Part shown: positions 1 through 48,389 of the stretch, one piece after another
Numbering within the stretch: position 1 is the stretch's first letter
Layout: each line of letters starts with the position of its first letter
DNA from: Epithemia pelagica
Taxonomy: Eukaryota > Protista > Bacillariophyta
Assembly (NCBI GenBank): GCA_946965045.2
Contig: OX337240.1
Span: 620,001 to 684,000, forward strand
Direction of reading: 5' to 3'
DNA length: 64,000 bases
The notes under the pieces: generated by a model
The model's input: the letters and a program-made list of their open reading frames with translations, nothing else
Databases searched by the model: none
What the model was told of the DNA's origin: nothing
Made by a program: the position numbers and the translations under genes

Positions 1-2
1 GA

Positions 3-754: not shown

Positions 755-766
755 TCCATCAATATT

Positions 767-2002
767 GTGATGGAGGGAGGAAATCGGAAACGGAAGGTGT
801 TGGAGGATTTGGAGAAACAAGCGATTGAAAAGGAAAAGGGCGAAGGCGAGTGCTGTGATAACCACTCGACAAAGTTTAATTGTTACGTAAAAGATTCGTC
901 GAATTCCACGTCGCCTGTTGGAGTGGCTGAGCGAAAGATCACTCGGTTGAAAGTAGGTAAAGGTGATTGTAAGATTGGGTTGGCGAGCGGTGGGACTCCC
1001 TTTTGGTTTTGGGCGGTGTCATCGCTGGGTGAGGTATTATGGATTGATACACCGGAAGAGAAGGTAGACAATGGGGAAACTGGAGCTTCCAGTTGGGCGA
1101 AGTTAGCGATCAGTCGAGAGAATCGCTTGTCGAAAAACAAGGGAACAAAGAAGATGAGAATCACGGTTCGGCAACCACAATCCTGGCAGGTTCGACCAGA
1201 AGTTGACGTTGTGTTGTTCGATGGAGGGTGGACTCCCACACCTGGCCATCCAGTTTGGAAAATGCCAACGGTTCAAGTGGTGTGTTGGATTGGAGGTCGG
1301 CAGGGTGCAGGACCACATCGTCAAGACCCACGGTGGACGACAACGACGATGCTACTGAGCCATGATGAATTGGGTGGAGTCACGACACAAGAGTCGCTGA
1401 TTCATGTGGCCGAGCGAGTGGTGGAAGAAAGAACGAACCGTTTTGTTGATTGTTGGAGGAATTTCATGGAACCAGGATTGGAGAATACAACGATGAGTGG
1501 TGTCATCGATCCAACGATTAATGGGCGCGACTGCCCGGCACCAACGGCATATGATCCAACGAAGGAGGGCGTCGGACTGGTCCATAGAAAGATGAACTGG
1601 AAGAAGGATCGACACCGAACTCATGTGCTCCCCAGTGTTTTCACCACATCGAGTTATGTGGAGCGTCGCCTCGCTCCCCAAGAGTTGGCAATTGCGTTGG
1701 ATTTCCCGGCTGAGCTTCATAAGAGGGGTTCACGGGATGAGTTGAATTGTTGGATAGAAGGACTGGTGGTTCCATTCAAATGTCGCGTCCAGGTTGCTCT
1801 CTCGTTGCGAGAATGGATGAGTGGAACACAGGAACAGGAGGAGGAAGAGTTGGTTCGTGATTTGGATTCTCGGCAAAGGGACCGAAATTCAGCGGCGAAT
1901 TCTGATGAGGCACGAATGACGGAAGTTGAGGCTTTGTACTCAGCTCTTGAAAGTGACGAAGGAGTTAGCTCATTGAATATCGAGGAACGTCGTGAGATAT
2001 AA
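767..2002 (+). CDS. DIRS ORF with degenerate C5 cytosine methyltransferase-like motifs; probably the N-terminal part of the pol polyprotein
   Basis: 411-aa ORF with IGLASGGTPFWFWAVSSLGEVLWID (motif I-like), EVDVVLFDGG (IV-like, no PC), LSHDELGGVT (VIII-like) and RRLAPQELAIALDFP (IX-like). Two -1 shifts (~2000, ~2133) would join it to pol through KATKSDDAEVPTYLWDDRI. Confidence 0.55.
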   Translation: MMEGGNRKRKVLEDLEKQAIEKEKGEGECCDNHSTKFNCYVKDSSNSTSPVGVAERKITRLKVGKGDCKIGLASGGTPFWFWAVSSLGEVLWIDTPEEKVDNGETGASSWAKLAISRENRLSKNKGTKKMRITVRQPQSWQVRPEVDVVLFDGGWTPTPGHPVWKMPTVQVVCWIGGRQGAGPHRQDPRWTTTTMLLSHDELGGVTTQESLIHVAERVVEERTNRFVDCWRNFMEPGLENTTMSGVIDPTINGRDCPAPTAYDPTKEGVGLVHRKMNWKKDRHRTHVLPSVFTTSSYVERRLAPQELAIALDFPAELHKRGSRDELNCWIEGLVVPFKCRVQVALSLREWMSGTQEQEEEELVRDLDSRQRDRNSAANSDEARMTEVEALYSALESDEGVSSLNIEERREI

Positions 2003-2099
2003 AAGCGACAAAGTCAGACGATGCAGAAGTCCCCACTTACCTGTGGGATGATCGCATCTGTGACAAACTGGGGATTCAGGACATAGCCCAACAGGCAAA

Positions 2100-4529
2100 G
2101 TGTGTCAAGGCCCTCAATGTTATTCGGAACGGTTAGTCTGTTCGGACTTTTGGGAGTGGTGGCGGTCTCAACGATTTGATCACGATAATGGAGATGTATC
2201 GTTGCGAGACCGAACGCTTCAAGCTGGTCTGAGTGCGTTGGCCCATGCCTCCCAGGCATCATGGTGGGACTGGGACAAGGGTTCCTCGCCGTTTTTCTGG
2301 CGGATGCCGGATGCTCAGTGGATGCGGGAAATGAGGGATGGGATCGCTCCAATGTGGATAGGAGAACCCCCTTCATACCGGCGCAGGCAACAAGCGAATC
2401 CTGATGAAAAACAGAGGGCATTTGAGAAGAAAAAACTGACGAAAGTGAGGACGCGAGGTTATATTGCTCCCACAAACGGCATCAAGTCTTTGACAAGTTT
2501 CTTTTCAGTGCCCAAGGGAGAGGACGATATTCGCATGGTATACGACGGTACCAAAAGCGGGTTGAATGCCTCTCTATTTGCACCTTGGTTCGGGTTGGGC
2601 AATGTCACTTCTATGTTGCGCACTGTAGAATCAAGAACATGGTCAGCAGACAATGATTTTGGTGAGATGTTCCTTAATTTCTGGTTGCATCCGGACTTAA
2701 GGGCATACACGGGCATCGACATCACTGACCTTTTCCCAGAGGAGTTGAAGAAGCGATTTGGAAGAACTCGATTATGGGAAGCATGGACGAGATGCGCCAT
2801 GGGTTTGACTACGTCTCCATATCAGGCGACACAGAATGCACAACGTGTCAAAAGAATCGTATTTGGGGACAAGTCAGATCCGAAAAACATCTTCGGATGG
2901 GTGGACGTCAGATTGAACTTACCAGGGGACGCAGACTATGATCCAAGCGTACCTTGGATTAGCAAGATCCGCGCTGACGGAGTCATCGCAGCTGATGTGC
3001 ATCCTTATGTGGATGATCTCCGAGAAACGGCGCCGACGGAGGAAGAAGCTTGGAATGCAGCGAGCAAAATGGCCAAAGGAGCGGCTTTCTTTGGATTGCA
3101 GGATGCTGCAAGAAAGCGCAGACCCCCAAGCAGAAAACCGGGCGCATGGGCTGGAGCAGTGATAGGAACGGATGAAAATGGAAATGTGTTCAAGACGGTA
3201 TTGGAAGAAAGATGGAAAAAGACTAAGGGGCACATCAACACCCTCAAGCAGTGGGCGAAGGAAGGAGGAAAGATCAATCGCAAGGAGTTAGAACGGGTGA
3301 GAGGTTTTTTGGTGTACGTGTCGCTAACGTTCGACACCATGGTTCCGTACCTCAAAGGCATTCATTTAACATTGGAGACATGGCGATCGGACCGAGATGC
3401 CGAAGGATGGCGATTGCCGGAAAAGGATCGGCGGAAGAGAAAATTTAGCGAGATGATAGCGAATGAAGTGCCTCCAAAAGAAGTGGATCCGGCTCCGCGA
3501 TTTGCAAGCGATGTTGCCGCTCTAGATGAATTGACGAAGGATGAATCGCCACCTCAGATCTTGGCTCGGCCAACAAAAGGAGCGAAAGCAGCGATTATCT
3601 TCGGCGATGCGTCTGGTGAAGGTTTTGGATCATCTCTTTGGCTGTACGGATCAGCGACGGTAGAGACTGAACATGGCCTGTGGACGAAGGCTTATGGAGG
3701 GCGATCATCCAACTATCGCGAATTGTACAATTTGGTGCTCAGGTTGGAAGCTTTGGTGGAGGATGCCACAATACCGAAAGGTTCTGAAATCTTCATGTTT
3801 ACGGATAACTCCACAGCAGAGTCTGCATTTTTCAGAGGCACCTCATCGACGCCGCTCTTGTACGAACTCGTGCTGAGAACGAAACGATTAGAGATGACGG
3901 GACAAGTCTTCGTGCGGGTGATATGGGTTGCAGGGACAAGGATGATTGAGCAAGGGACTGATGGTTTGTCCCGCGGAGATCTGATGACTGGAGTCATGGC
4001 AGGAAGCGACATGCTGATGTATGTGCCATTAAACAAAACTGCCGAGGAAAGGCAAAGTGGATTGGCCGAGTGGCTAAAGAGTTGCGCTCCATCGCTGCCC
4101 TGGAAGGTGTTGGATACCAAGGATTGGTTCGATCGAGCCTTCGATGACGAAAATTTTATCTGGATGCCACCTCCTGCAATTGCCGATGTGGCCGTTGATC
4201 AGTTGTGCGAGGCACGCCATATACGAACTCGAACCGGACACATGTTTATTTGCCCTGCCCTTATGACAAATTGCTGGCGTAAAAAGCTCGGCAAAGTTGC
4301 GGATTGTGTGTTTACCGTGCCAGTGGGCAGTTTCTTGTGGAGAAAATCTCAACACGAACCTTTGATTGTTGCTTTTGTCTGTCCTTTTCTTTACAGACGT
4401 CCCTGGCAAGTTAAGCGGAACAAGAGTTTACTGGAGCAGGTGGACGGGGAATTGCAAGGCTTGTGGCCGACCGGTCCTGCCGCTGTCAGGGATTGCTTGC
4501 GCAAACTTTGGGTGTACCAGGGGGACTAG
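2100..4529 (+). CDS. DIRS pol: reverse transcriptase, RNase H and C-terminal MT domain
   Basis: RT motifs DNDFGEMFLNF and HPYVDD. RNase H motifs FGDASG, ELY, FTDNS, GTDGLSRG. C-terminal FIWMPPP...FICPALM..W resembles the DIRS1 MT domain. Confidence 0.92.
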   Translation: MCQGPQCYSERLVCSDFWEWWRSQRFDHDNGDVSLRDRTLQAGLSALAHASQASWWDWDKGSSPFFWRMPDAQWMREMRDGIAPMWIGEPPSYRRRQQANPDEKQRAFEKKKLTKVRTRGYIAPTNGIKSLTSFFSVPKGEDDIRMVYDGTKSGLNASLFAPWFGLGNVTSMLRTVESRTWSADNDFGEMFLNFWLHPDLRAYTGIDITDLFPEELKKRFGRTRLWEAWTRCAMGLTTSPYQATQNAQRVKRIVFGDKSDPKNIFGWVDVRLNLPGDADYDPSVPWISKIRADGVIAADVHPYVDDLRETAPTEEEAWNAASKMAKGAAFFGLQDAARKRRPPSRKPGAWAGAVIGTDENGNVFKTVLEERWKKTKGHINTLKQWAKEGGKINRKELERVRGFLVYVSLTFDTMVPYLKGIHLTLETWRSDRDAEGWRLPEKDRRKRKFSEMIANEVPPKEVDPAPRFASDVAALDELTKDESPPQILARPTKGAKAAIIFGDASGEGFGSSLWLYGSATVETEHGLWTKAYGGRSSNYRELYNLVLRLEALVEDATIPKGSEIFMFTDNSTAESAFFRGTSSTPLLYELVLRTKRLEMTGQVFVRVIWVAGTRMIEQGTDGLSRGDLMTGVMAGSDMLMYVPLNKTAEERQSGLAEWLKSCAPSLPWKVLDTKDWFDRAFDDENFIWMPPPAIADVAVDQLCEARHIRTRTGHMFICPALMTNCWRKKLGKVADCVFTVPVGSFLWRKSQHEPLIVAFVCPFLYRRPWQVKRNKSLLEQVDGELQGLWPTGPAAVRDCLRKLWVYQGD

Positions 4530-5943
4530 CAGAGTCTGTGACGGAATTTGGCATGCAAGATGCTACAAGCAGCTGACAGAGGACAAATTTCCTGTCTATG
4601 AAGCAGGAGACTTGGACGACGCCTTGTTAGATACAGAGCTCCATGGTGAATTGGCCGATGATGAACAGCGCTTCAAAGAAGCACGGGTTGGCGATGATTT
4701 GATGTGTGTGTTTCAATGCGACGATTGTAGCTTCTATAATCTGCAAGGAAGGTTTGCAAACGCACACAAGGAAGCAGACAAGTTGTTGTTGTTGTGCATT
4801 CGCAGAGCGATCTTGGATTCCTTTTGGTCTCGAGAGCGTACTACGGTGGAGAAGAATTGGAGAGAGGTGAGAGGTCTGATCGAAGCTGGTGAAGCCATGG
4901 GTTTGGACCAACCCTTACCACAGCGAGGACCATGTCCAGTGGCAGACGATCAAGGACTCAAGGTGGCTTGCCTCATGTTGATGAAGACGATGAACCAAGG
5001 AAGGAACTCAAGACACATCCAATTTGAAACAGCACGAAAAGTAAGATCAGCGGTGTCAAATTTCTATCATGCGCTGCCGGGTGGAACTGGCTTGGCAACG
5101 GTCGGACACGGTGATCGAGGTGGATTGTTTTTTAGTGGAAGTCCGACGAATTCCCATTGGTATAAGCGATTTATGACAGGTTGTCATCGGCGGATGGGAG
5201 ATGTCTGGATACCAGATCAAGCCACCACATTGGATGAGGTCAAGGCTGGTTTGGCTGTGTTGGAGGAGGAGTGGCAAGGAGGATTGCAGGGTGCAAGGAA
5301 GCGAGAGGTAGCGTTAACAGGTGCATTGGTTGTGGCTGGATTTGTGGCGGCTCTGAGAGGTGAAGAAATCCCTCAAATCGACATCGGATTGATGCGGAAA
5401 TATTGGGTCGAGGGCATTGAATACCCCCGAAAGAAACATGTTCCTTTGGCTCTGGCCGGTCGCTTCAAGCAAACCAACGGAACCTTCAGAATTTACATCC
5501 ACCCATTGGCGGACACGACAAGTTCGGGCATTGAAGTTCGGTTGTGGTTGGAACGAGCCATTCGATGTTGGAATGCCAATGGGGTGACTTCTGGGCCGCT
5601 GTTCCGAGTAACAAAAGGAAATGGGAAGGTATCTCGCGCTTCTGTGGGTGACTTAGACGTCTTATTCCACGATTTGTGGAAGCGCGTGCAGCATCGATAT
5701 CCGCAACTCATTCCAGACATGACAAAGGTGGAGGAGGCATATAGTGTGAGGCGATCATTGCGAAGAGGAGCAACAACAGAGGCTCAAAACAGGGCAATTC
5801 CAACGGACGTACTTGAGGCAAATAATTGATGGAGAAAACACTTGAGAGGAAGAGGAATCCTTCCCACAATGTCGATGGTGGAGAGATACACTGATGCCAA
5901 GGCTTCGGTGGAAGCTCTTGTCAGGTTTTCAGAACTGATGTGA
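4366..5943 (+). pseudogene. Tyrosine recombinase of the DIRS element with a premature stop
   Basis: ALRGEE (Arg) and SLRRGATTEA (HxxR-box equivalent). TGA at 5827-5829 interrupts NN*WRK; the frame then continues through MVERYTD (likely catalytic Tyr, 5887-5889) to TGA 5941-5943. Confidence 0.88.
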
Positions 5944-6439
5944 AGAAGAAGATCGTAAAATGATAAAGAGATGATGACAAGATATGAGGGGAACGACCAC
6001 ACGGGGTGAAGACTCGACCGTACTACCTAGTGGTACGTCCAGGTCGCTTGTTGTCTGTCAGCTTGACTGTTAAAGATCAATGGGCTATTTCTCCAGGTTG
6101 GTTGCTGGGGGGTGGCACCCTACAGCATCTGACTACTGTACTACTGCGAAGAGATTTCGAGAGTACAGGCTCACTTTGTGAGTAGAAGGAGAATGGCTCA
6201 CTGGTTGGAGACACGCTCGTCCACAGCAGACGCGCATTGTTCAGAATCTGGAGTTCTGGCAGCGCGGCGCGATTCCGGATCCCTCCCTATATGGGATTGA
6301 TATGGGATTGATGGGTGGGGGGCCTATACCCCCCCCCCCCCCAGTGTTGGTTAAGTACTTTAATATAATGTTATCAGGATGATGAACGTGACACGAACTC
6401 TGAAGAGTGTGTTGATTGGAAGAGTGAGGATGAAGTACT

Positions 6440-6490
6440 GTCGTCCTACGTCACATGCGGTTGGGAGGAACTTTCTACGCGCATCCCAAA
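6440..6490 (+). repeat. Left remnant of a duplicated promoter segment (paralog of 20497-20537), split by the hAT insertion
   Basis: gtcgtcctacg...ttgggaggaactttctacgcgcatcccaaa matches 20497-20537. Confidence 0.9.
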
Positions 6491-6556
6491 CAGGGTTGTG
6501 TAGCAGGGTTGTAAAGTGACTATAGAGACGATAGTGAATTTACTCTGCTCCTTTTA

Positions 6557-7914
6557 CCCTCGGTATCAGTGTCCACTGCTTAGCTGTTTTTTGTCTGTGC
6601 CATCATTTTAGGTTCCCAGGTGGACACAGACATCATTTTTTGCTTTTGAGACAAATAGAAATGATCAAATGGCAAATTGGCACGCATACCCAGCTGGAGT
6701 TTTCACAGTTTGAAACAGACGCATGCCCAGCAAGCGGCCGTGCGTGGATAACTGCTGGTTGCTCCATAATTCATAATGACAAGCACACAATTCTTTTCTC
6801 TTGTTGCCGAAGCACATCGTACGAATGGCATTCCAGGTGAGTGTGATCCGTTGCCAATTGCCATGACAATTACATAGCTCATGCTCACTGATCACTGACA
6901 CTTGTCACTTTTGTTTGCTCTGCTCATGGGAAGAGAGGCGATCATCTGTTGTGTCTCTGGGTAGCTCATTACGTGCCATTCTACATTTCGAAATGACGGA
7001 TTTTTGATAACTTTCATTCGATTCATAAACAGACTGCAGACATTGTTTTCTTTATATACTAGGAGTAGAAAAAGAACTCAAGTGCTATTCATTTGTAGAG
7101 TTCAGTGCATTCTGAATTCGTTGCAGATCTCTTTTCTGTTTTGAGCATGGCAATGACTCTCAGTTTCACCATGAACACAAGCAGCTCTCACACGCTACAG
7201 CTACAACTTTTGACTCTATGAACTGATAGACATGGAAAGTAGGGTGTGGCAAGAGCAAGAGGGCTTCCCATCTATTTGAAGCAAAAACAACAAAGTGTTC
7301 GGTCATTGAGAAATGAGATGATGCTACGACCTATGACGATAGTGAATCATCTATCCTACAGAAGACATGAAAGCAACCAACCAACAATCAAACAACAAAA
7401 CAATTACTCCTACATCAACAAATGAGACGGGTAAGATACTCCAGTTGTCATCAAGCGGCTTGTTCCTAGTCTACTCGTTCAACAAGAGACAAGCCAAAGG
7501 ATCATGCATGAACAAGAGGAAAGATTGCAGCAGTGATGAGTGAGAAGAAAGAAAAAGAAACAAGAAGATTAGAAATAAGCCACAGTAGTGAGAAGTGAGA
7601 AGCAGTTCAGGTTCAGCCCAGCATGTTGCATCCATTGTTCTCACCTCACGTCATGGTCAAGCATTTGGCTCGGTTTTTGGTGTTTTGTGACAGACGAGGA
7701 CGGGAGGGTTGCCCAAAAAATTTGAATCGTGGTGACCAGAGGACAACCACCAACCGTTAACTGTCACATGCACGCTGGCCTTGCTCCAACCCTGAGGAAT
7801 TTTATTGGGTAGACAGACAGACGAAAAACATAAAATGCTGGCTGTGTCCACTTGGGAACCTGTGAAGGTGGCACAGACAAAAAACAGCTAAGCAGTGGAC
7901 ACTGATACCGAGGG
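6557..7914. mobile_element. Non-autonomous TIR element nested in the hAT left end (CCCT termini, piggyBac-like)
   Basis: Perfect 46-bp inverted repeat (6557-6602 / 7869-7914) extending imperfectly to ~85 bp. No long ORF. Flanks TTTA/AATA are not a clean TSD, so the superfamily is uncertain. Confidence 0.8.
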
Positions 7915-8350
7915 AATATATTTTATCAGTGAATATACTTAGTGTTATCGAGTCACCTTCAAAATCATAGTGAACCAACCTAGTGAATTACAATTCCTCT
8001 ATATGATCCTCTTGACTTTACTTAGAATTATGTCTCAAAGTCAATTCACCGTGTCTCTCCACGTGACTTACTCTGTCTACACACATAATTGACTTTGACT
8101 TAGAATTTATCAATAATTCCCTCTAATTCTCTAATAATTCTCTGACTTAAGTAGCGTTTTTCCTAATGACTTAAGTCAATACAACCATTGCATGATACTA
8201 CACTGTAATGTCTGCTAGTTAACGGTATATGGTGCCAGGTGCCAGTGCATATTTGCTCGTTACACACTCTGCACTCTGCACCTCTGCACCTCTGCATTCG
8301 ACACTCTGCACTTCTATTCGTTTCAAGTCTACTTTCTGCTTTGAAACAAA

Positions 8351-9277
8351 ATGGTTCCTGCATGGAAGAGCCATCACCACATTATTTACGAATCGAGATG
8401 TCAAACTCGATACATCCTTCACTGTCCCATTTCACTTGTTATATTTTTGGAAGAAGAACTTCACTCACCACAAGATGACAACGAAGATGAGAGTCTCGTG
8501 ATGATCCTATCCGATCTCATCTTAACTTGGCTAATCCGAACAAACAAGACTGTGGCGGTCAGACAAGTCAATACATTGTCCTCAAGGACACACAAGTGCA
8601 CAGCCAACAGCATCTCTTCCAACAAGGCAATTGAACAAATCTCACAAACTATCATTGAAGCAGCAACTTCTGCTTCCTTGACCCATTTTATTGACACCGA
8701 TTACCCAGAACATGCCAATCCATGTTTGGAGATCTATTGTTTACCTACCTTTGAACGACAAGAATGTTCCAACAAGCATTTGCTACGCTGTTCCGAATAT
8801 ATGATAGAGCAAAGCAAATTTTGCCATCTCCCCTTCTCAAGTCTCATCATGTCTTGGATGGTTCGAACGAATTGTCGTTTTCTTGTGCAGTCCCCAATTC
8901 CAACTGGAGAGGAAGGTCCTCGTTTCATGTTTCTTCCTAGCACCATCTTTCCTCTCATTGACCTATTTGTGGACAAAGTAAGAGTCTTCATTGATGAAAA
9001 TGACAAACCAACACAACAACAAACCAACCCTGCCAATCCTACGAACATTGAATCTATCTCTCCCCAACTTGTCACCCCGGTCTCTACAAAGAAAAGGAAA
9101 CAGACGACCGTGAATAAATCATTGTTCCATCCTTATTCTACTCGGACAAGAACTACGCAAATCTCACAACTACTACAATCTGCATCTCGGTCAAAGATCA
9201 AAATTAAATACCACATCCGTGGTATGACAACAGAACGACATATGCCAGGTCAACCACCCATTTTACTGCCTCTCTGA
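8351..9277 (+). CDS. Hypothetical protein (hAT cargo, up to 308 aa)
   Basis: Long ORF inside the TIRs with a twice-repeated motif (LILTWLIRTN / LIMSWMVRTN). Its stop lies 10 nt before the glycosylase ATG. True start uncertain. Confidence 0.6.
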   Translation: MVPAWKSHHHIIYESRCQTRYILHCPISLVIFLEEELHSPQDDNEDESLVMILSDLILTWLIRTNKTVAVRQVNTLSSRTHKCTANSISSNKAIEQISQTIIEAATSASLTHFIDTDYPEHANPCLEIYCLPTFERQECSNKHLLRCSEYMIEQSKFCHLPFSSLIMSWMVRTNCRFLVQSPIPTGEEGPRFMFLPSTIFPLIDLFVDKVRVFIDENDKPTQQQTNPANPTNIESISPQLVTPVSTKKRKQTTVNKSLFHPYSTRTRTTQISQLLQSASRSKIKIKYHIRGMTTERHMPGQPPILLPL

Positions 9278-9287
9278 AGGAAAATTC

Positions 9288-10115
9288 ATGTCCTATACAT
9301 CACTTGATCCGGTCACCATGCAAAAACAACGCAATCTCCTGTTTGGTCTTCTAAGTTTTCGTAACCATCTGCTCAACAACAACATCGTTTCCCCAAGAGA
9401 CAACTGGGAACAATGGATGGACGACTATTTGGAAAATCCCTCAACTATTGGTGATTCACATTCTCAACAACCAGACCGTGCCTTTATGTGCTTAATTATC
9501 ATCATTATGAGCTCGAGCACATCGGATTCTCACCTTGGCAAAATTATCCCTCGGTTATTTTCCATCGGGCTAACCTCTGCCACCGCTTGTATCGATATTG
9601 CAACCCAATACGGCATGGATGCATTCTGTGCTCTAATCTCTGATGCAGGACGATACTATCAGAATGCGGAACGAATTGTAAACTGCGCGGACTATTTTAT
9701 ACAGACACATGGAGGAGTGATCCCTCCTAATATTTGTGCCCAAGAATTTCAACGTCTACGCGGCATTGGACACAAGACCGTTATGATTGTCCTATCTTCT
9801 TCATTTTCTCGCGATGAGGGGATACCATGTGACGTCCACGTATTCCGATGGTCTTTCCAATTGGAATGGACACGTGGCAAAAAGATGGAGAGTGACTCTT
9901 TCCGTTGTTCCAATCTCTTAACCTCGTGGATACCCAGGGATTCGTGGAAACAGATTAATCCATTATTTGGATCTCTCGGGCCACTCCTACAATCAAACAA
10001 AACTCGCCCACAAGTGCTTTCATTGCTTGATTCCTATTCCGAAACACATGCTGGCAATAATGTGAAGCAACTGGTACCTATGATGGCCAACATATATCAA
10101 CGCAGCGGAAAGTAG
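9288..10115 (+). CDS. Endonuclease III (Nth)-like HhH-GPD DNA glycosylase, hAT cargo, no 4Fe-4S motif
   Basis: FMCLIIIIMSSSTSD, AGRYYQNAERI, HGGVIP, HhH motif LRGIGHKT (Lys 9774-9776), GIPCDVHVFR (Asp 9831-9833) and SWIPRDSWKQINPLFGSLG all follow the Nth/NTHL1 pattern. Confidence 0.92.
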   Translation: MSYTSLDPVTMQKQRNLLFGLLSFRNHLLNNNIVSPRDNWEQWMDDYLENPSTIGDSHSQQPDRAFMCLIIIIMSSSTSDSHLGKIIPRLFSIGLTSATACIDIATQYGMDAFCALISDAGRYYQNAERIVNCADYFIQTHGGVIPPNICAQEFQRLRGIGHKTVMIVLSSSFSRDEGIPCDVHVFRWSFQLEWTRGKKMESDSFRCSNLLTSWIPRDSWKQINPLFGSLGPLLQSNKTRPQVLSLLDSYSETHAGNNVKQLVPMMANIYQRSGK

Positions 10116-10226
10116 AATTAATTGGATATTACTATAGTTCTTAGTTCTTTCTTCATGAAAGTCTTTGGTTTTTGGTGGATTGTGGATATCTTTCTTTGTT
10201 TTCTGTTTGTGTTTCGGTACTGTAAC

Positions 10227-14012: not shown

Positions 14013-14099
14013 GAGTTGATTGTTGTTTGTTTTGTCTGTTTCTGAGAGTTTCGTATGAAGAAGGTGCAGTGATTAGTGTATGTGTACATACACAGGAGA

Positions 14100-15056: not shown

Positions 15057-15069
15057 CTACACAACCCTG

Positions 15070-24154: not shown

Positions 24155-24325
24155 TCGGAAGTTGCTTCATGCTGCAAGTTGATTTTGTGGCGCGCGCCGA
24201 TATTGTTCACGAATGAGCGCGGGGGGATTCCCTAGATGACACAAGAACGGAGAGCGGGCAACAATCAAACAAACAAACACAACAATCAAACGAACGAATC
24301 CCTATTGTGTTCTCACTTTCCAACG

Positions 24326-36588: not shown

Positions 36589-36602
36589 GATTAACAGTCT
36601 CA
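36589..36602 (+). other. Putative primer-binding site complementary to the anticodon arm of tRNA-Asn(GUU)
   Basis: GATTAACAGTCTCA abuts the LTR; its reverse complement TGAGA-CTGTTAA-TC reads as stem, GTT loop, stem. Confidence 0.65.
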
Positions 36603-36626
36603 TCGTTTATTTCCGAGAAGCTTTCG

Positions 36627-37382: not shown

Positions 37383-37716
37383 GTAACTTTACGTAGTTTC
37401 TACACCAAACCAGACACAAGACCGAGTTCCGTCCAAGACTTAAACTCAACGCACATCCGGGTACCCTTGGTCGCACAACACGCCACACATTCCCGTCAAA
37501 TCGCGAAAATTCGGCGAAAATTTGTTGAAACTCGGCGAAAATTTGTCGGAATCAACGGAAATTTCCAGGAGTCGCACATCACAACACACATCCGGGTATC
37601 ACATACGTGGTACATACGTGGCACACGTGGTACATCCGGGTTCACATCACATCACACATTAAATAAACCACATCACACCGCACATTAAATAAACATCGAA
37701 CCAACCAAATAACATC

Positions 37717-40700: not shown

Positions 40701-43398
40701 TCACACTTCCTCTCCCACCCACTCTGGCCGCACCCCTCTTGAGGCTCTTACCGGTACCCCACCCGACATTACCCATCTCCTTTTCTTTCCTTTCTGGGAT
40801 GAGGTCTACTATCGTGTCGACCCTTCTGAACCTACCTCCGGTTCTTACCCTTCGTCTCCCGACGAGAAGCTTGGCCACTGGGTTGGTTTTGCCCACAATG
40901 TTGGTGATGCCTTTACTTGGAAGATCCTCACTGCCGACAACGTCATCATCTACCGTTCCGCTGTCCGTCGCGTTGCCTCCACTACCCCCAACCTTCGTGT
41001 GGATATCTCTTCAGGGGAGGAGTCGCCGCATAAACCCACTGACAAGCAAGGTGACACTGTCTTTATTCGCAGCAGAAGTGAAGACCCATCCACACCAATG
41101 CCAACAATTGACTATGACGATTTAGTTGGACGCACATTCCTTTGTGACACTGAAGAGAATGGGGAGCGCCACCGAGCACGAGTAATCAAACGAGTTGTCG
41201 ACCTGGAACAAGATGCAACCAAACAAGAAGATCGACTCAAATACATCTTTCGCAAGTCTAACTCCAATGTTGATGAGATGATCTCCTACAACCAGCTCAT
41301 GGAATACATTGAAAGGGATAATCAAGCCCAAACGACAGGGGATAGTCTCTTCCGATTCAGAGACGTTATTGCACACCAAGGACCTTTGAACTCAAGCGAC
41401 CCAGACTATAAAGGGAGTAAATATAATGTCCTTGTTGATTGGGAGACTGGGGAGACGACATACGAACCTCTATCTCTTATTGCAAATGATGACCCCATCA
41501 CAGTCGCCATCTATGCCAAGAAAAATGGTTTGCTGGATCTACCTGGATGGAAACATCTCAAGCGATACGTCAAGACAAGCAAAAGACTCATTCGAGCAGC
41601 TAAACAATCCAGGATCAAACAAGTTCGTCGCTCTATCAAGTACAAGTTTGGTTTCCAAGTACCTCGCACCTATGAAGAAGCAGTGGAACTAGACAAGCAG
41701 TTTGGGAACACGAAATGGCAAGACGCAACAGAATTGGAACTCTCACAGATCCAATCGTATAACACTTTCAAGAACCATGGAAAAGCCAAGTTCATTAATG
41801 GGAAATTGGCCAATGCACCAGAAGGATATCATAAGATAAGAGTACATCTGGTCTTTGATGTCAAGCATGACGGAAGGCACAAGGCACGACTTGTCGCAGA
41901 TGGACATCTCACCAAGGAACCCGTTGAGACCATCTATTCAGGGGTTGTCTCCATTCGCAACCTTCGCATTGCCATATTTCTTGGAACCATGAACGACATG
42001 GAAATATGGGGAGCAGATATTGGGAACGCATACCTAGAAGCATTGACAGGAGAGAAGATTTTCATCATTGCAGGACCAGAGTTCAAGGAGTTAGAAGGAC
42101 ATATCTTGATCATCTACAAGGCATTATATGGTCTCAAATCCTCAGGTGCTCGCTGGCATGACAAACTGTTTGATGTTCTCATTGATATGGGATTTTCTCC
42201 AAGCAAGGCTGACCCTGATATTTGGATGAAGAAGGCTCCTGGAGAAGACTGTTATGAATATATCGCTGTATATGTTGATGACTTAGCTATCGTTGCCATG
42301 GACCCTGAAGCTGTCTGCAAGATCTTTACAGAAAAATACAACTTCAAACTCAAAGGAGTCGGACCTATCGAGTATCATTTGGGGTGTCGTTATACCAAAG
42401 ATCCAGACGGTACACTTGTGTCTGACCCACGAAGGTACATCGAGAAGATGATGGATACCTATGAACGATTGTTCAATGAGAAACCCAAGAAAGCAAAGCC
42501 GCCAGTCATTGCTAACGATCATCCTGAACTCGATGACTCTGAGCTCTTAGATGAAGAAGGGACCCAGCATTTCCAGACTCTTATTGGACAACTGCAATGG
42601 CTAATTACCATTGGCCGTTTTGATGTCTTTCCTGCTACCATGACTCTATCAAGGTTCAGAGCTGCTCCAAGGATTGGTCATTTGAAGCGAGCTAAGCGCA
42701 TCTATGGATACCTCATGTCATTTCCTGATGGGTCTATCAGATTCCGCACTGGGGAGCCAGATTTATCAGCTTTACCTACCCAAGAATACGATTGGAGTCG
42801 TACTGTATACATGGACGCCAAGGAACGTATCCCTGAGGACTGTCCAACCCCACTTGGGCGTTTTGTGACAACTATACATTATGTCGACGCAAATCTCATG
42901 CATGATATTGTTACTGGGAAAGCAGTTACAGCCATCCTGCATTTTGTAAATGGTACACCCGTGGACTGGTACAGTAAGCGACAAGCCACAGTGGAAACAG
43001 CCACGTATGGATCTGAATTTGTTGCCGCAAGGACTGCAGTTGATCAGATCACGGAGCTACGCCTTACACTCCGATACTTGGGAGTCCCTCTGCGAGAGAA
43101 GAGTTACATGTTTGGAGATAACCGCTCTGTCGTTATCAATAGCACCACACCACACTCAATCATCTCCAAGAGGCACCATCTCCTATCCTATCACCGAGTC
43201 CGTGAAGCTATCGCTGCAAAGTACGTCGCATTCTACTGGAAAGATGGAAAGACAAACCCAGCTGATATCCTCAGTAAACATTGGGAATTCGCCGCAGTTT
43301 GGCCCATGCTCAGATCTTTGTTATTCTGGAGAGGAAAAATCCAGGAAAGTGATGAGGGAATTGACAATCCTCATTCGACGAATTGTGGGGAGTGTTAG
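37717..43398 (+). CDS. Copia gag-pol polyprotein (1893 aa)
   Basis: Protease LIDRGANGG. Integrase VATDSIF...ISDGG...KAENR. Chromodomain-like FRFRDVIAHQ...YNVLVDWETGETTYEPL. RT GADIGNAYL and YVDD. RNase H YVDANL, ETATYGSE, FGDN, NPADIL. Confidence 0.97.
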   Translation: MEATPPKTPFTPPEDKSSHITDQDLFDHITKGIFGCNDERAQSLQKWMRHHGFEHILHVLDHVATDPEETLKDLMQYKVGKQVNDLQTSTRLQLKLMAYWLLQQRQLQHGKLPRATWMNLTRDQYDDWRINTDFTKSGMNQDPVSPLKSPAHSVSSRSPTTSSTTSQSMLDLSAFKKGTKRDATAFESFKDERYFDSFWRVFKSTAKAQGLSNVLDFNYKVPKDDECAELLFREQQVFVYSVLVRIIQTDQGRAYVREHEHDEDARAVLKKLHVLHTESDLAKREVLRLTSYISNLRLDDSWRGTTRQFLLHFQEQLRLLDNLVPLSDRIHDHTRMTFLMQAVEKVPDLRRVKILDNVVNTKSGAKSLCYQSYFRLLLDAAFDHDQATRTSASNRRRHVKQHEFQLDEPFEPVEPPDYQINNTNIQSEKFPTSSKISLPRDVWFKLSEEDRQIIVDFNKSVQDSPTTPRKVQTHSLDIDPEPDPDPDANNVGDTHQDAPEQDPFDTSSDPVTQFVHQAIASTDINHPASDLSNILSTSTTKSSPKVKFKSSADHKQKVHMSRYLFSRKSTFSGNQLIDRGANGGLAGSDMRILAKTGRHITIVGIDNHELTGLPVVTCAAKFDTSDGPIIGIFNEYAHYGKGLSIHAPAQFEHFGLSVDERSVKVDGKQRITTLDGRALPLRIKDGLAYIQSLGIPSDDDMDKYPHIVFTSPHIWDPSVLDHTHPDPHQDPAPNWTSVETDGSMETYPYDQYGEYTDRVVCTLNLLLDLPYDHGPDTPSFFSIYADQDGNDPTLHASVHKLYKEQYDWKKFRPFFGWQSEDVIADTFKHTTRHGHISFDQDTLKKHFKARNPILNLPRRHEPVATDSIFSDTPAVNHGGKIAQIFVGRDTLVTDIYGIKSTKQFVNTLQDNIRTRGVMETLISDGGSSLISHKVKDILRTLLIGEYRSEPYHQHQNKAENRYQTVKRMTNAIMNASGCPASAWLLCLEYVCDLLNHTSSPTHSGRTPLEALTGTPPDITHLLFFPFWDEVYYRVDPSEPTSGSYPSSPDEKLGHWVGFAHNVGDAFTWKILTADNVIIYRSAVRRVASTTPNLRVDISSGEESPHKPTDKQGDTVFIRSRSEDPSTPMPTIDYDDLVGRTFLCDTEENGERHRARVIKRVVDLEQDATKQEDRLKYIFRKSNSNVDEMISYNQLMEYIERDNQAQTTGDSLFRFRDVIAHQGPLNSSDPDYKGSKYNVLVDWETGETTYEPLSLIANDDPITVAIYAKKNGLLDLPGWKHLKRYVKTSKRLIRAAKQSRIKQVRRSIKYKFGFQVPRTYEEAVELDKQFGNTKWQDATELELSQIQSYNTFKNHGKAKFINGKLANAPEGYHKIRVHLVFDVKHDGRHKARLVADGHLTKEPVETIYSGVVSIRNLRIAIFLGTMNDMEIWGADIGNAYLEALTGEKIFIIAGPEFKELEGHILIIYKALYGLKSSGARWHDKLFDVLIDMGFSPSKADPDIWMKKAPGEDCYEYIAVYVDDLAIVAMDPEAVCKIFTEKYNFKLKGVGPIEYHLGCRYTKDPDGTLVSDPRRYIEKMMDTYERLFNEKPKKAKPPVIANDHPELDDSELLDEEGTQHFQTLIGQLQWLITIGRFDVFPATMTLSRFRAAPRIGHLKRAKRIYGYLMSFPDGSIRFRTGEPDLSALPTQEYDWSRTVYMDAKERIPEDCPTPLGRFVTTIHYVDANLMHDIVTGKAVTAILHFVNGTPVDWYSKRQATVETATYGSEFVAARTAVDQITELRLTLRYLGVPLREKSYMFGDNRSVVINSTTPHSIISKRHHLLSYHRVREAIAAKYVAFYWKDGKTNPADILSKHWEFAAVWPMLRSLLFWRGKIQESDEGIDNPHSTNCGEC
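43387..43392 (+). other. Polypurine tract
   Basis: GGGGAG immediately before the 3' LTR. Confidence 0.7.
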
Positions 43399-44150
43399 GA
43401 TTCTCACCGAAAACTAGGTGGCGAAACCTACAACTCATCGAATGATGCTAGTATTTTATGGCATCCGATGACACTTTCCTAAAAGTGAGAAAAGAATGTC
43501 GGCATGCTCGCGAAACTATAAATTTGGCCACGGCATGCTCGCAGTGCACGCGTTATCGGCGACCGCTCGGATATTAACTATGGCCCAACACGTGCGCGCC
43601 CAAAACTATCAAGTGCGCGCCTCTACTATCCGAGTACGCGCATCCACGATTCGACCTAACGGTCTATGTAATCAAAGCACGAATCACGATCACGCGAGAC
43701 CATATCTCTGTTCCCACAAATCCAAGAATGCAAACAGCAACGCGCCCAGGACAAGACTTATACCACGACAAAGCAAGAGCTGTTGCATCCCATACATGTT
43801 ATCCATCACCCTATACATCCAATATACACCAATGCCGGTCTACTCCAACCAGTGAGGACCTATCACACCAGATCCATGGCCGTATGCAAGAGCCAGGACT
43901 TCGGCACCGTCAACCACCTTAGTTAGTAATCGTCTCACAATCATTAATATCACCATTTTAACACTCATCTTAAGACTAACCTCTTATCAGTGGACCGACT
44001 GCCCCCACCCACGGCGGACTTCGACTTGCAACTCTTCTCTGACCCGTGGAGGATTGTTGTATCGGTTGGTGATTCGATTGTCGGCTCAGCGAGCCTTTTA
44101 CCTATCCTAACTATCTGTCTAACCCCTGTTGAATCGAGAGAAGTTTATCA
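43393..44150 (+). repeat. 3' LTR
   Basis: 758-bp direct repeat of 35831-36588. Confidence 0.97.
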
Positions 44151-45539
44151 GCCTTGGCCCGTACAACCATGACGACAAACTACGAGTTGGTGACGTACAA
44201 CACCTCGTCTATCAGGAGAACGATCGTGGTCCAGTTGCTAAAAAAGGCCATCGTCTCAATGACGCGCAGCGTGTCGCATCGAAGAATACACACCGAACTG
44301 GTAGAAAGAAAAAGCGCAACCTCACAAAGAAGGAGCTCATGGCAAAACTTGTCCGGGTCATGGGACCTGGAATGCAACGTTCATTTCAATCGAAAAATGC
44401 TGGTGAACTACAGGACCTTTGTAAACGCTCCAACATTGCAACGGTGATTGAAGATGATGTGATCGAGGAAGGCTGGATGAATGCTGCAAAAGGGCTCTTT
44501 CAAGTGTTATGGGAGCGGGGGTGGATAGACCCTAACAACATGATCAAGTACGTCAAGACAACCAGAGATGCATGGTTGGAAGCGGATAAGAAGACTGTGA
44601 AAGAAGCCTATCAGGCGGACTACAAAAAGTACTCTATGGTTCATCTGATGAGCGAATGCTCCGATTTCAAGAACGAAAAATCTGCAATGGAGAAGCTGGC
44701 GGAAGACTTGTCTGAACGACATCGTTGCAGGATCGAGATTCTCGTATCGACCAAGTATCACTGTGAAATGGCCGGTGAGGGGATCGAGTATGGCTGGGGT
44801 TACTCAAAAAAAGTCTTTTGTGCTTTCTCACTGAATGAGAAGAAAGACAAAGCTGCCTTTTTACGATGTTTGACAGCGAGCCTGAAGAAAACAACACCCG
44901 AAATCATGCGGAAAATGTCAGCAAAGGCACGTCGCTATATGCTCGCGTACTTGTTATACGATCAAAATTCCAACAACAGAGACTATGCAGCTGCGGGCCT
45001 CTCGTATGCCGAAATTGAAAAGATGTCAAAAGCAATCAAGTGTCACCGATCCGCCTTCGACCAAGATCATGGCTTCATCTCACGTCTCTGGAGAGAAACG
45101 CAAGGATCTGGTGCAGTAGAAACCTGATCTAATCTCCATTTATCATCAAAATGCATGTAACTTAACTATTTATAACAGCAATCCATTTTATTGAATGTAT
45201 TTCTTGTCAGTTATTGGTATCAATGATCACTTCCGTGTTGCGTGCTCGTGTTGCGTGTTGGATTATCAGTTTGTAAGTACCTCGAAAATGTGAGAGAGCG
45301 AGAAAATGGACGATTTTCGGAGCAGACCTCGCGCGAAACACGCCTCCCTCTCCGAAAACGCGCACGCATCGCAAAACTGGCACGCAAATCCTTAAGTAAC
45401 TCAGCCCACATACCAAAACTTCACCGTTTTTTAGTATGTGAGCTCAAGATTTTTTTTTTGGAATGTGAGCTGAGGGCTGAGGAGAATGCTGCGTTTCGTG
45501 TTTCTTGTGTTTCGTGTTTCGAGTTTTTGCGTTTCGACC

Positions 45540-48389
45540 ATGGGGAAAACAAGCTCTAAGAAACAGTATTCAAAAGCAGGCGCTCAAAAACGAGACAGCA
45601 TGAGTGACAAAGGAAATCTTGACGCTCTTATACTTGCAATAGATGCAGCGGAAGAGCAGTCAGCCAAAGCAGCAGCGGCGCCCGAAGCAGCAGCAGCCGC
45701 AGCACCCGAAGCAGCAGCAACAGACGAAGCGACAACAACAAAGCACCATCGGTTTCTTTCGGATCAAGACTTTGCCGAAGTGAAGGATAAAAAGCTTGCA
45801 GATGTTCGGCGTGGCCATCCAGAGAAGGACCACAGCAAACAGTATTCGGAAACTCAAATGCGGCAGCTCCTCATCGATACGCGCACAGAGGACTACAAGA
45901 AAGGCATCGAGGAAGTGGAGAAACTCCCTTCTCGTTCTGGACGGGATCCAATCAGGACTTTCTCCGAAGGCCTCAAGACGCTCTCCAAGATCAAAGACAG
46001 TGCTGTACTTGCCTGTGCTATGGGAGAGTATGTCTCACGGAAGATTTCGGCCACTTTTTCGGTCCAAGAAGCTCCAATTCGGAAGCCCGGTTCTGGCTTG
46101 TCAAAGGGGAAGATTGTGCCACTTTCGAGTGGAATGGGTCTCCCTGTCAAGAAGAACAGAAAACATACCTTCCCGATCGGCAAGCATGTCGGTTACACAT
46201 TTGCGAACAATCCGGTAGTCAAGATCTACCTTGGAAAAGTGCTTCTGTTTGAGGTGAAGGAGTCAAAACTCCCAGGCGCCGGGTTTGGCGTTTTTGCAGT
46301 TCGGACAATCAAAGATGGTGAAGTGATTGGTGCGTACACGGGAAACGACGTCACGTCTCGGACAGTTGTACCCAACGAGTACGCGATTCAGTTCGGACGT
46401 GACAATCGAAGGCTTCAAGCAGACAACGACGATCACTTCGGCATGGGGCTGCACTTAATCAACGACCACCTACACCATCGGTACGGTACAGACAATCCAC
46501 CGGATGAATCGGATGATCATTACAACGTGAGAATCATGCCGAATCTTCTAGTCAAGGTAATCAAGCCGATCGAAAAGGGCGACGAGCTGTCTTTGTTTTA
46601 TAACCTTTCGGACGAATCGCCGACGTCCTCCGAACAGGTTATCCGACCGTCGACGAAAGGTGACGACGACGAAGACGAGGGAAAGAAACGCGGTCGACCC
46701 AGTGATGAAAATGAAGACGACGGGAAAAAAACAAAGAAGCCTGTCTTAACTTCTCCTTCTACTGTTTTCCGTCCAGTTGCTACTGTTGCTCGTCCTCCTT
46801 CTCCGCCTCCTCCGCAATACGTTTCTGAGCACTACAATTCGCCCCCTCAGCTGCCGCCGCATTATCCTCCGCAATATTATCACCATCCTCCGCCGCAGTA
46901 CAATTATCCTCCGCCGCAGTACAATTACCCTCCGCCGCAGTACAATCATCATCCTCCGCCGCATTATCCTTATCCTCCGCCGCATTATCCTCATCCTCCG
47001 ACGAGTCATCCTCCGCCGCAGTACCATGGACATCCTCCGTCCTACAATCAACCCAACTATGGAGGTTACGGGGGGACTCTACCTTCATCGCTCCATCATC
47101 AGCAGCAACAACAACGCACGACCCAGCCGGTCGAAGGCTCACCCCACCTCCTTCCGAGCAATCCCATCCCACCTGCAGCACAAGCTCAACCCGTGCTCCT
47201 TCCCAGCAGTCCCGTCCTACCTGCAGCACAAGCTCAACCCGCCACTCAAGCCAATCCCAGCCCTAGTACTGGAATGTTCGTACCAGTGGTAATGGCAGAA
47301 GATGACACGGATAGTATTTTTGAGGAGATGGAAGCGATCGATGCGAAAGCGAAGGAGAATGAGCGTTTCGAGAAAATGAAGTTGTTACATAGAGAATTGC
47401 GCTCGAAGTATTTCAAATGGCTGTACGATATTGAAAACAAAATGTATCGAGGATATTTTTTGACAACTCCGCCAGATCTCCTCGAAATGTTGGAGAATGC
47501 GTGGTACAGCACAGGCTTGGACCAGAAAGGAAAGGGCAAATTTTTCAAATCTGTTCAAGACTACACACCAAATTTGTTGATGGCAATGATGGAACATGAG
47601 GGAATGGTGTCCAACATTCGGTACTTCGGCCACGTTAACCCCGAACATGCTGCAAAGGTCACGGCCAATTTCAAGCAGCTGCTTGCCTCAGCTCTCTATG
47701 GGATGAACTACGCAAAAGATGATTCATTTGCGGACCAAATCAACATTCACCTTTCGTTCATGAAGACCACAGAGGCAAAAGTTCAAGAACCTCACATCGA
47801 CTTCTTGTTCCAGAGCGTAACAGGGAACATGTCCGAAGGTCCCAAAACGCCCTCCGGGAAGCAACCAATCAAAAAGACTCGGAGAGCGAATGCAGATCTG
47901 CCACTCCGGGAACGCATGCCTTTTATTGTTTTCATGCCCCAGGCGGAGGAGGGTATGTCCGTTGAATTGTGGAGTTTCCGCGGTGAGAAGCACAAGGATT
48001 ATATGAACGAGCTGGGTAAAGTGGTACATATCCCATATGGCACGTTTCTCCTCGTTCGAGGAGATACTGTCCATGCTGGTGGCTTTAAGACTGGGGAGAT
48101 GGGGAATCCACGTGCACATTTCTACGTGTACCAAGGAAAAGATGGGACCGTTCACGATCCCATGCCAAAGAACACCTACAACCTTCCTTCTGGAGAAAGC
48201 AGGCTTTCCGACTACTACTTCCATGACAAAGACATCCCTGGTGTTCGCCGAAGTGGGCTCGTTGGGGTTAAGCTTTGGGTCGGGGACAAGCGTGTTTGCG
48301 TCCTAAGTGACAATCCTCGTAAGGTGCTTGTGGCCGCGAATTATAAACCTGGTAAGAAGATCGCGAGCAAAGAAGCCGATCAAACTTAG
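45540..48389 (+). CDS. Cargo ORF-C, copy 2: SET plus 2OG-Fe(II) dioxygenase-like protein (949 aa)
   Basis: SET half almost identical to copy 1. C-terminal half diverged but retains QEPHIDF, RGDTVHAGG and NPRAHFY. Confidence 0.87.
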   Translation: MGKTSSKKQYSKAGAQKRDSMSDKGNLDALILAIDAAEEQSAKAAAAPEAAAAAAPEAAATDEATTTKHHRFLSDQDFAEVKDKKLADVRRGHPEKDHSKQYSETQMRQLLIDTRTEDYKKGIEEVEKLPSRSGRDPIRTFSEGLKTLSKIKDSAVLACAMGEYVSRKISATFSVQEAPIRKPGSGLSKGKIVPLSSGMGLPVKKNRKHTFPIGKHVGYTFANNPVVKIYLGKVLLFEVKESKLPGAGFGVFAVRTIKDGEVIGAYTGNDVTSRTVVPNEYAIQFGRDNRRLQADNDDHFGMGLHLINDHLHHRYGTDNPPDESDDHYNVRIMPNLLVKVIKPIEKGDELSLFYNLSDESPTSSEQVIRPSTKGDDDEDEGKKRGRPSDENEDDGKKTKKPVLTSPSTVFRPVATVARPPSPPPPQYVSEHYNSPPQLPPHYPPQYYHHPPPQYNYPPPQYNYPPPQYNHHPPPHYPYPPPHYPHPPTSHPPPQYHGHPPSYNQPNYGGYGGTLPSSLHHQQQQQRTTQPVEGSPHLLPSNPIPPAAQAQPVLLPSSPVLPAAQAQPATQANPSPSTGMFVPVVMAEDDTDSIFEEMEAIDAKAKENERFEKMKLLHRELRSKYFKWLYDIENKMYRGYFLTTPPDLLEMLENAWYSTGLDQKGKGKFFKSVQDYTPNLLMAMMEHEGMVSNIRYFGHVNPEHAAKVTANFKQLLASALYGMNYAKDDSFADQINIHLSFMKTTEAKVQEPHIDFLFQSVTGNMSEGPKTPSGKQPIKKTRRANADLPLRERMPFIVFMPQAEEGMSVELWSFRGEKHKDYMNELGKVVHIPYGTFLLVRGDTVHAGGFKTGEMGNPRAHFYVYQGKDGTVHDPMPKNTYNLPSGESRLSDYYFHDKDIPGVRRSGLVGVKLWVGDKRVCVLSDNPRKVLVAANYKPGKKIASKEADQT

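Follow-up and report, generated by a model that had tools for sequence, protein, structure and literature searches.

The 64-kb stretch of Epithemia pelagica DNA analysed here (the window; positions 620001-684000 of contig C16 in the 60.5-Mb, 23-contig assembly that was searched as the genome) is dense in mobile elements, and two of them carry an accessory gene for an enzyme-type protein. The first is a hAT transposon with a gene for an endonuclease III-like glycosylase; the second is a TA-flanked DNA transposon, probably Tc1/mariner-like and present in two copies, with a gene for a protein that joins a SET domain to a 2-oxoglutarate (2OG)-dependent dioxygenase domain. Both genes lie within the ends of their elements, are multicopy, are conserved in their pairing with the element and encode intact catalytic residues. 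We hold this anatomy of elements and cargo with high confidence. The original prediction had placed DNA- or chromatin-modifying cargo in three unrelated transposon superfamilies; this holds for the hAT and TA-flanked elements and fails for a DIRS-like element, whose supposed C5-methyltransferase is without support. That prediction also placed the cargo-bearing elements in one locus. Every element examined is multicopy across the genome, including all four that it had singled out, so their shared location needs no special explanation: it reflects a transposon-rich region, not a system. In the literature searched, we found no description of either cargo, that is, of a glycosylase in a hAT element or of a SET-2OG protein in a TA-flanked element.

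A glycosylase gene inside a hAT transposon

The hAT transposon (6504..14434, minus strand) is an old copy that holds two genes and a nested non-autonomous element, as delimited by its inverted ends and by collinearity with paralogues. The ends are of the CAGGGTTG type, the actual sequences being CAGGGTTGTAAAGT and TAGGGTTGTGAAGT; the general form is YAGGG.., with CAGGG and TAGGG in the window copy and CAGGGTTGTGAAGT at both ends of paralogues. Perfect 8-bp target duplications flank three of these paralogues (L022, L023 and L024: GTGGGGGG, GTCTTACG and CCGTTCAC, respectively). The duplication around the window copy matches at just five of eight positions, which suggests an old insertion. All five paralogues, each on another chromosome, are collinear with the window over 8014-10100 and 10831-14433, so the region with the glycosylase open reading frame (ORF) belongs to the hAT element. 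The transposase (10227..14012, minus strand, 1261 aa) contains the C-terminal hAT dimerisation domain PF05699 (25.8 bits against a cut-off of 21.4); its amino-acid identity to the paralogues is 60% overall and 75% in the core, where dN is 0.16.

As had been predicted, the glycosylase ORF (9288..10115, plus strand) sits within the same pair of inverted ends as the transposase, and the two genes stand tail-to-tail. The ORF encodes an HhH-GPD domain that scores just below the Pfam cut-off (PF00730, E 2.4e-5, 25.1 bits against 26.2) and that matches human NTHL1 (E 1.9e-12) and Escherichia coli endonuclease III (E 8.9e-11) in the PDB. In two intact paralogues (L021 and L024) the gene is a single ORF of 641 codons, with an N-terminal region of about 300 aa followed by the catalytic domain. 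The corresponding N-terminal part in the window (8351..9277, plus strand, 308 aa, no known domain) is severed from the catalytic part; it is 49% identical to the paralogues at the amino-acid level, with a dN/dS of 0.26. The catalytic domain is under purifying selection: window and paralogues share 76-77% of its protein sequence and about 71% of its DNA sequence, with a dN of 0.18, a saturated dS (>3.5) and thus a dN/dS of about 0.05, the same constraint as in the transposase core.

The pairing of the two genes extends to more distant members of the clade. A word search returned 32 proteins of similar length that are 40-98% identical. Six distant relatives (42-62% identical) were looked up, five of them from assembly ERZ21939226 and the sixth from a sediment metagenome, and all keep the glycosylase gene tail-to-tail with a hAT transposase gene, PF05699 being recorded for the neighbour genes; the pairing thus persists across lineages that are 41-62% identical. 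Three of the six (L050, L053 and L054) have both genes between CAGGGT.. ends with perfect 8-bp duplications, giving elements of 6.4-6.9 kb. Across a 30-sequence alignment, in which lineages are 41-76% identical, the helix-hairpin-helix glycines G159 and G161, the catalytic K163 and the catalytic D182 are invariant. The region around K163 and D182 aligns with GVGPK and VDTH of NTHL1, with the aspartate about 20 residues downstream of the lysine.

A profile of the clade finds NTHL1 as its best match in the PDB (E 5.5e-22), followed by bacterial endonuclease III; no other glycosylase family matches strongly. No conserved cysteine of a [4Fe-4S] loop follows the INPLFG motif, in either the consensus of the 30-sequence alignment or the window ORF. 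DEMETER and ROS1 are absent from the PDB profile hits at E <=0.01, in a PDB set whose inclusion of DEMETER or ROS1 chains is unconfirmed. We read the clade protein as one of about 550-640 aa whose C-terminal domain appears to derive from eukaryotic endonuclease III (NTH1), with loss of the Fe-S loop.

A miniature inverted-repeat transposable element (MITE; 6556..7915, no strand assigned) of 1360 bp with 91-bp inverted ends is nested in the hAT element, at its left end. At least 20 copies of this MITE are 97-99% identical, which points to very recent activity. Beyond the right end, a repeat of about 630 bp (14442-15069; copies elsewhere 90-98% identical) ends in the hAT-like sequence CAGGGTTGTGTAG, and a 13-bp end matching it (6490-6503) lies directly beside the hAT element on the left, so the autonomous hAT may have inserted into or beside a related MITE.

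A SET-2OG gene inside a TA-flanked transposon

Two copies of the second cargo-bearing transposon lie head-to-head, 439 bp apart. The left-hand copy (22951..32713, minus strand) is a full-length element of 9763 bp with terminal inverted repeats and belongs to subfamily A; the right-hand copy (33153..51805, plus strand), of subfamily B, is split by a Copia element and by a 607-bp insertion (50837-51443). The latter has perfect inverted ends of 61 bp and occurs in the right-hand copy only. Inverted ends beginning CAAGCTGAGTTCAG.. are preceded by TA at all four ends of the two copies, and the flanks permit only a 2-bp TA duplication and nothing longer. At least 20 other copies (95-100% identity) share the positions of both element ends, and in all of these copies the SET ORF adjoins the 1124-aa transposase ORF within one pair of inverted ends.

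Variants A and B recur in about 9 and about 13 copies in the genome, most of them intact; the identity between the two is 99% across the SET region and 69-70% across the C-terminal domain. We considered whether the 10-kb inverted repeat in the window could be an assembly palindrome or a mosaic produced by gene conversion, and rejected both because variants A and B each recur elsewhere and because only one arm has the Copia target duplication. The arms are instead insertions of two subfamilies, each with its own TA-flanked ends, and the recurrence of these subfamilies explains the mosaic identity of the arms without gene conversion.

The 1124-aa ORF (29060..32434, minus strand) encodes a putative DDE-type transposase, probably IS630/Tc1/mariner-like. 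It has no Pfam match at E 10 and no PDB match. Its language-model look-alikes include DDE_3 clusters (score 0.91, 195 shared features). The clusters nearest to it are mostly from Bacillariophyta, an indirect sign that the source is a diatom. Together with the TA-only flanks, the DDE_3 look-alikes lead us to assign the element tentatively to the Tc1/mariner-like group, where it probably belongs. In most copies (L027-L035, at the equivalent of window positions 32426-32428), the third codon of the ORF as listed reads TAG, so the true start lies probably downstream of it and the extra N-terminal residues in the window are probably not translated. In the right-hand copy, the Copia insertion split the transposase gene, and the ORF at 44129-45127 (plus strand), which had been taken for an orphan, is its C-terminal fragment; the uninterrupted site is visible in the left-hand copy. 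Inverted repeats I1 and I4 overlap at the 5-bp Copia target duplication. Two ORFs, 23582-24154 (minus) and 24236-24988 (plus), lie in the 2.8-kb interval that separates the SET-2OG gene of the left-hand copy from the left end of that copy (22951-25740), and neither matches any family.

The cargo of this element, a SET-2OG fusion, is likewise as predicted, with a SET domain above the Pfam cut-off and a 2OG fold recovered by modelling. Variant A (25741..28701, minus strand) encodes 986 aa, with the SET domain at residues 266-373, a linker rich in proline and histidine, and the dioxygenase domain at about residues 670-925; variant B (45486..48389, plus strand) encodes 967 aa, and its SET domain is 99% identical to that of variant A. 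About 22 intact ORFs of roughly 970-990 aa are present in the genome. The SET domain scores 29.7 bits against PF00856 (cut-off 22.4) and retains the ELxxxY motif as GDELSLFY; its NH(S/x)C motif is degenerate (LINDHLHH).

The C-terminal domain matches no Pfam model. An exhaustive search collected 224 relatives, in which the motifs QxPHIDF, RGDxVHAGG and NPRxHxY are conserved, and in an alignment of 54 sequences the metal ligands H180, D182 and H275 (HxD...H) and the 2OG-binding R288 are invariant or nearly so. A structural model built from this alignment (pLDDT 83, pTM 0.80) matches AndA, FtmOx1 and AsqJ in Foldseek at E 1e-6. Structural alignment gives a Z of 12.8 and an rmsd of 3.2 over 194 residues, with prolyl hydroxylases next at Z 11.6; the Atlas structural search with the model leads to PhyH clusters, and in a profile alignment the distal histidine aligns with H205 of FtmOx1. 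The model thus presents the C-terminal domain as a PhyH-type Fe(II)/2OG dioxygenase with a double-stranded beta-helix fold. Neither TET/JBP nor JmjC proteins are among the top structural matches listed (33 from Foldseek, 50 from VIA-align), which weakens the analogy, drawn in the original prediction, with the TET/JBP enzymes of Kyakuja-Dileera-Zisupton (KDZ) transposons.

Between variants A and B, the 2OG domain has a dN of 0.225 and a dS of 0.394 (dN/dS 0.57), and the HxD, H and R motifs are kept. A diverged, decaying copy (L056:9227-10660) preserves the order SET-then-2OG at 37% identity in the 2OG domain and 50% in the SET domain; its linker is much shorter, and a search of the surrounding 10 kb shows no related transposase. 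The genome also contains two more multicopy 2OG groups, which are 42-47% identical and have ORFs of about 895-943 aa. Relatives of the 2OG domain in other organisms have ordinary host genes as neighbours. No domain fusions were found among the long relatives; one member of the family has Med26. Relatives of the transposase at 43-45% identity have no 2OG domain nearby (every candidate scored). The host context of the 2OG relatives and the cargo-less transposase relatives together fit a scenario in which one transposon lineage captured a host-type gene, which we consider plausible. Capture from a host is plausible for the glycosylase as well, whose profile comes closest to eukaryotic NTHL1.

DIRS-like and Copia neighbours

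The other two elements singled out originally are ordinary neighbours, without demonstrable enzyme cargo of this kind. At the left edge of the window, and running off it, lie the 3' two-thirds of a degenerate, multicopy DIRS-like retroelement, probably of the tyrosine-recombinase type (1..6445, plus strand). At least ten full-length relatives match positions 100-6000 at 70-97% nucleotide identity, and the end near 6445 is common to other copies. No terminal repeats occur within the sequence of copies L001 or L008, and the element extends beyond it. In intact copies, the gag-like ORF (at least 650 aa) is followed by an in-frame TGA, then by pol (1273 aa) and by a further ORF of 525 aa. The TGA (752-754 in the window) parts the gag-like ORF from pol in the same frame in five of five copies (the window copy, L004, L007, L008 and L009), making it a candidate for programmed readthrough.

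In the window, a frameshift near 2002-2100 separates the conserved N-terminal domain of pol (767..2002, plus strand) from the part resembling reverse transcriptase (RT) and RNase H (2100..4529, plus strand), and the tyrosine-recombinase-like ORF (4366..5829, plus strand) is truncated to 487 aa from the 525 aa of intact copies. These assignments follow from motifs read in the sequence, namely FSVPKG..R.VYDG and YVDD for RT, FGDASGEG for RNase H and ALRGEE...RRSLRRG...NRW...ERY for the recombinase. None of the three has Pfam or PDB profile support. The DIRS RTs of Symbiodinium also escape Pfam (PMC5890265), a precedent that the missing support for the window RT fits.

It was the ORF at 767-2002 that had been read as a separate cargo gene for a C5-methyltransferase. 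This ORF is no separate gene: it corresponds to the first ~415 residues of a single pol ORF, fused to RT, in four intact copies (L004, L007, L008 and L009). Nor does it resemble a methyltransferase by any statistical measure we applied. It has no Pfam match at E 10 and no PDB profile match; a six-frame search of the genome with PF00145 recovers eight host loci and no copy of the element; and a word search with the domain returns ten relatives, none with a Pfam domain. Comparison with host DNA methyltransferase (DNMT) domains by hhalign gives a single local alignment, which covers motifs IX-X in 47 columns and has an E of 0.63-0.76 and a probability of 0.06-0.08%. An AF2 model of the domain from an eight-sequence alignment reached a pLDDT of only 34.8, too low to use. 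Among 12 sequences with identities as low as 28%, 48 columns are invariant, so the domain itself is well conserved. In all copies, the candidate motif IV reads GGVTTQ, with VTT in place of Pro-Cys, and the position of the S-adenosylmethionine (SAM) motif reads LFDGG(W/L), with FxGxG absent. As both the Pro-Cys and the SAM motif are missing, the domain is not an active DNA methyltransferase, and we take it to be a core part of pol, not cargo. We therefore rejected the methyltransferase reading.

The Copia element that splits the right-hand TA-flanked copy is a young Ty1/Copia element of 8320 bp (35831..44150, plus strand). Its long terminal repeats of 758 bp differ at two positions and have TG..CA ends, it is flanked by a GCCTT 5-bp duplication with the uninterrupted target in the other arm, and at least 14 copies are 99-100% identical. 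RVT_2 matches residues 1364-1583 at 86.5 bits, with a weak rve match (residues 899-952) ahead of it; the ORF at 36567-37382 has no family match at Pfam E 10. The identification as Copia is thereby upheld, and the chromodomain ascribed to it is not: the stretch in question (41419..41560, plus strand; pol residues ~1235-1280, between integrase and RT) has no Pfam match at E 10, PF00385 included, and no relevant PDB match, and its sequence, Y.VLVDWE.GE.TYEP, is chromodomain-like by eye only.

The window has further repeats. Direct repeats of about 400 bp (15070-15468 and 20530-20927, 94-100% identity; third copy at C16:612976) flank a 5.46-kb segment that contains a hybrid histidine kinase (16215-18305; HisKA, HATPase_c and Response_reg) and a dienelactone-hydrolase-like ORF (19115-20278). 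Two tandem arrays of a 282-bp repeat (51975-52755 and 55687-57031) encode 94-aa acidic repeats in the ORFs 52150-53112 and 55862-58288.

Possible roles of the cargo enzymes

Cargo confined to single copies, or evolving neutrally, would have counted against the original prediction. Both genes are multicopy and conserved, clearly so for the glycosylase and less strongly for the SET-2OG gene, so these two objections fail. Our preferred reading, which we hold at a little short of an even call, is that two unrelated cut-and-paste families each carry a long-maintained accessory enzyme gene and that the enzymes work for the element, which they would benefit by acting on DNA or chromatin marks. Most likely the enzymes would act on the element's own DNA or chromatin and counter host silencing: the glycosylase would remove 5-methylcytosine (5mC) or its oxidised or deaminated products, and the SET-2OG protein would change the marks on histones or proteins in the element's chromatin. 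We propose this anti-silencing mechanism tentatively, as an idea with real but minority prospects. That two superfamilies independently recruited active enzymes to erase or rewrite the host's silencing marks on the elements themselves, with an endonuclease III derivative lacking Fe-S acting as a demethylase or 5mC-lesion glycosylase and the SET-2OG protein as a bifunctional chromatin 'writer-eraser', seems rather unlikely to us as a complete account.

Several observations weigh against our preferred reading. All functions proposed here are read from sequence and models. The glycosylase gene of the window copy is broken by a stop and a frame change at 9275-9288. The encoded enzyme is closest to repair enzymes for oxidised pyrimidines (NTHL1), not to DEMETER/ROS1, and is without the Fe-S loop; similarly, the 2OG domain has its nearest relatives among hydroxylases of small molecules and of proteins rather than in TET/JBP or JmjC. 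As those nearest 2OG relatives hydroxylate small molecules or proteins, the range of possible SET-2OG substrates stays wide. The dN/dS of the 2OG domain between subfamilies is no lower than 0.57, and the Tc1/mariner assignment draws on language-model similarity and TA flanks only. The breadth of the glycosylase clade is also limited. Assembly ERZ21939226 has a MITE family in common with the window at 92% identity and contains 98%-identical members of the glycosylase cluster, so it probably comes from the same or a sister species; breadth across species then comes down to one sediment-metagenome contig and to JGI and Logan fragments (sequences alone).

Among other explanations, the one that fares best concerns the glycosylase, for which a repair role is a serious rival to demethylation because its nearest relatives repair oxidised pyrimidines. 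In this explanation, the enzyme would be a factor for self-repair or transposition repair: it would clear oxidised or deaminated pyrimidines (for instance T:G pairs from deaminated 5mC) from the heavily methylated DNA of the element and so slow its mutational decay, or its apurinic/apyrimidinic (AP)-lyase activity would aid excision or insertion intermediates. The profile match to NTHL1 and endonuclease III, both glycosylase/lyases for oxidised pyrimidines, the invariant lyase-type lysine and the lack of a DEMETER/ROS1 match at E 0.01 or better all agree with this role. However, host base-excision repair should already perform it, the missing Fe-S loop and the additional 300 aa at the N-terminus suggest that the specificity is a new one, and we know of no hAT mechanism that requires a glycosylase. 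Overall we judge a repair role unlikely, though it deserves to be weighed alongside demethylation.

The full original picture, in which three or four superfamilies convergently took up epigenetic modules, including a DNMT-derived domain in the DIRS-like element and a chromodomain in Copia, seems to us quite improbable. It can point to the chromodomain-like appearance of the Copia stretch and to the fact that the single hhalign alignment falls on DNMT motifs IX-X (RrL.p.ELA.ALDFP against R..T.RE.A..QSFP), and there is a precedent in the SymbioDIRS-Dnmt3 elements, which have a DNMT in pol beside a divergent RT (PMC5890265). Yet that alignment has an E of 0.6-0.8 and a negligible probability, Pfam and PDB profiles are silent on both the DIRS-like domain and the Copia stretch, PF00145 matches host loci only, and with the Pro-Cys and SAM-binding motifs absent the DIRS-like domain would at best be a dead fold. 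Least probable is that the enzymes are inert passengers, fragments of host genes picked up as in Pack-MULEs and amplified without function: the host-context relatives of the 2OG domain, its dN/dS of 0.57 and the several broken copies would suit this, but it is largely refuted for the glycosylase by a dN/dS of ~0.05 at saturated dS, by catalytic residues that are invariant across lineages 41-76% identical and by a gene order kept in every hAT lineage examined, and for the SET-2OG protein the metal and 2OG ligands are kept, as is the SET-then-2OG order at 37% identity in the 2OG domain.

Should the two superfamilies indeed have recruited enzymes that erase or rewrite silencing marks, these would be the first anti-silencing enzymes to come from genes of cut-and-paste transposons. 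Known cases of transposon-encoded epigenome regulators are few (VANC, DNMTs and DAMs in retrotransposons, and TET/JBP with KDZ elements); the glycosylase and the SET-2OG protein would add new enzyme classes to them and extend the phenomenon to cut-and-paste transposons of a major marine algal group. Intact and broken copies stand side by side in the genome, a natural experiment for comparing methylation and chromatin, and both cargo proteins are small enough for expression and assay.

Comparison with known systems

The hAT glycosylase shares with endonuclease III/NTHL1 and with their plant derivatives DEMETER/ROS1 the HhH-GPD fold, the catalytic lysine and aspartate, and the signature of a bifunctional enzyme. 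It differs from endonuclease III and NTHL1 in having no [4Fe-4S] cysteines, in its extra N-terminal region of 300 aa and in its location within a hAT transposon; we detected nothing in it that is specifically similar to DEMETER/ROS1.

For the SET-2OG protein, two systems offer partial parallels. SETMAR (Metnase) is a primate fusion of a SET domain with a mariner transposase, domesticated as a single-copy host gene. There too, SET is physically tied to a mariner-type transposase; however, SETMAR has SET fused to the transposase, whereas the SET-2OG protein is encoded by a separate ORF in a multicopy transposon that looks active. TET/JBP dioxygenases were reportedly linked to KDZ transposons in fungi by Iyer et al. 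in 2014. In both cases a gene for a 2OG-Fe(II) dioxygenase travels with a DNA transposon, but the 2OG domain described here is PhyH-like (FtmOx1, AsqJ, AndA, PHD2) and fused to SET, and the transposase resembles DDE_3, not KDZ.

The Mutator-like VANDAL21 element of Arabidopsis is closer in its general logic, being a DNA transposon with an accessory gene, VANC, that is thought to act on the element's own epigenetic state. VANC, though, is a sequence-specific DNA-binding protein without an enzymatic domain, whereas the accessory proteins here are of enzyme type (a glycosylase, and SET plus a dioxygenase) and belong to hAT and probably Tc1/mariner-like elements.

That mobile elements can carry DNA-modifying enzymes is, as a general theme, already established (PMC5890265; bioRxiv 10.64898/2026.05.21.726589). 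DNMT-carrying retrotransposons include SymbioLINE-Dnmt, SymbioDIRS-Dnmt3 and KnitGypsy-Dnmt3 (PMC5890265), and DIRS and LTR elements that carry DAM have been described as well (bioRxiv 10.64898/2026.05.21.726589). Unlike SymbioDIRS-Dnmt3, the DIRS-like element of the window has no demonstrable DNMT. The likeness to these systems lies in DNA-modification enzymes that are under purifying selection (Ka/Ks <0.2 there, ~0.05 for the glycosylase here). The carriers of DNMT and DAM, however, are retrotransposons equipped with writers of methyl marks, whereas the elements described here are cut-and-paste transposons equipped with a base-excision enzyme and a SET-2OG protein.

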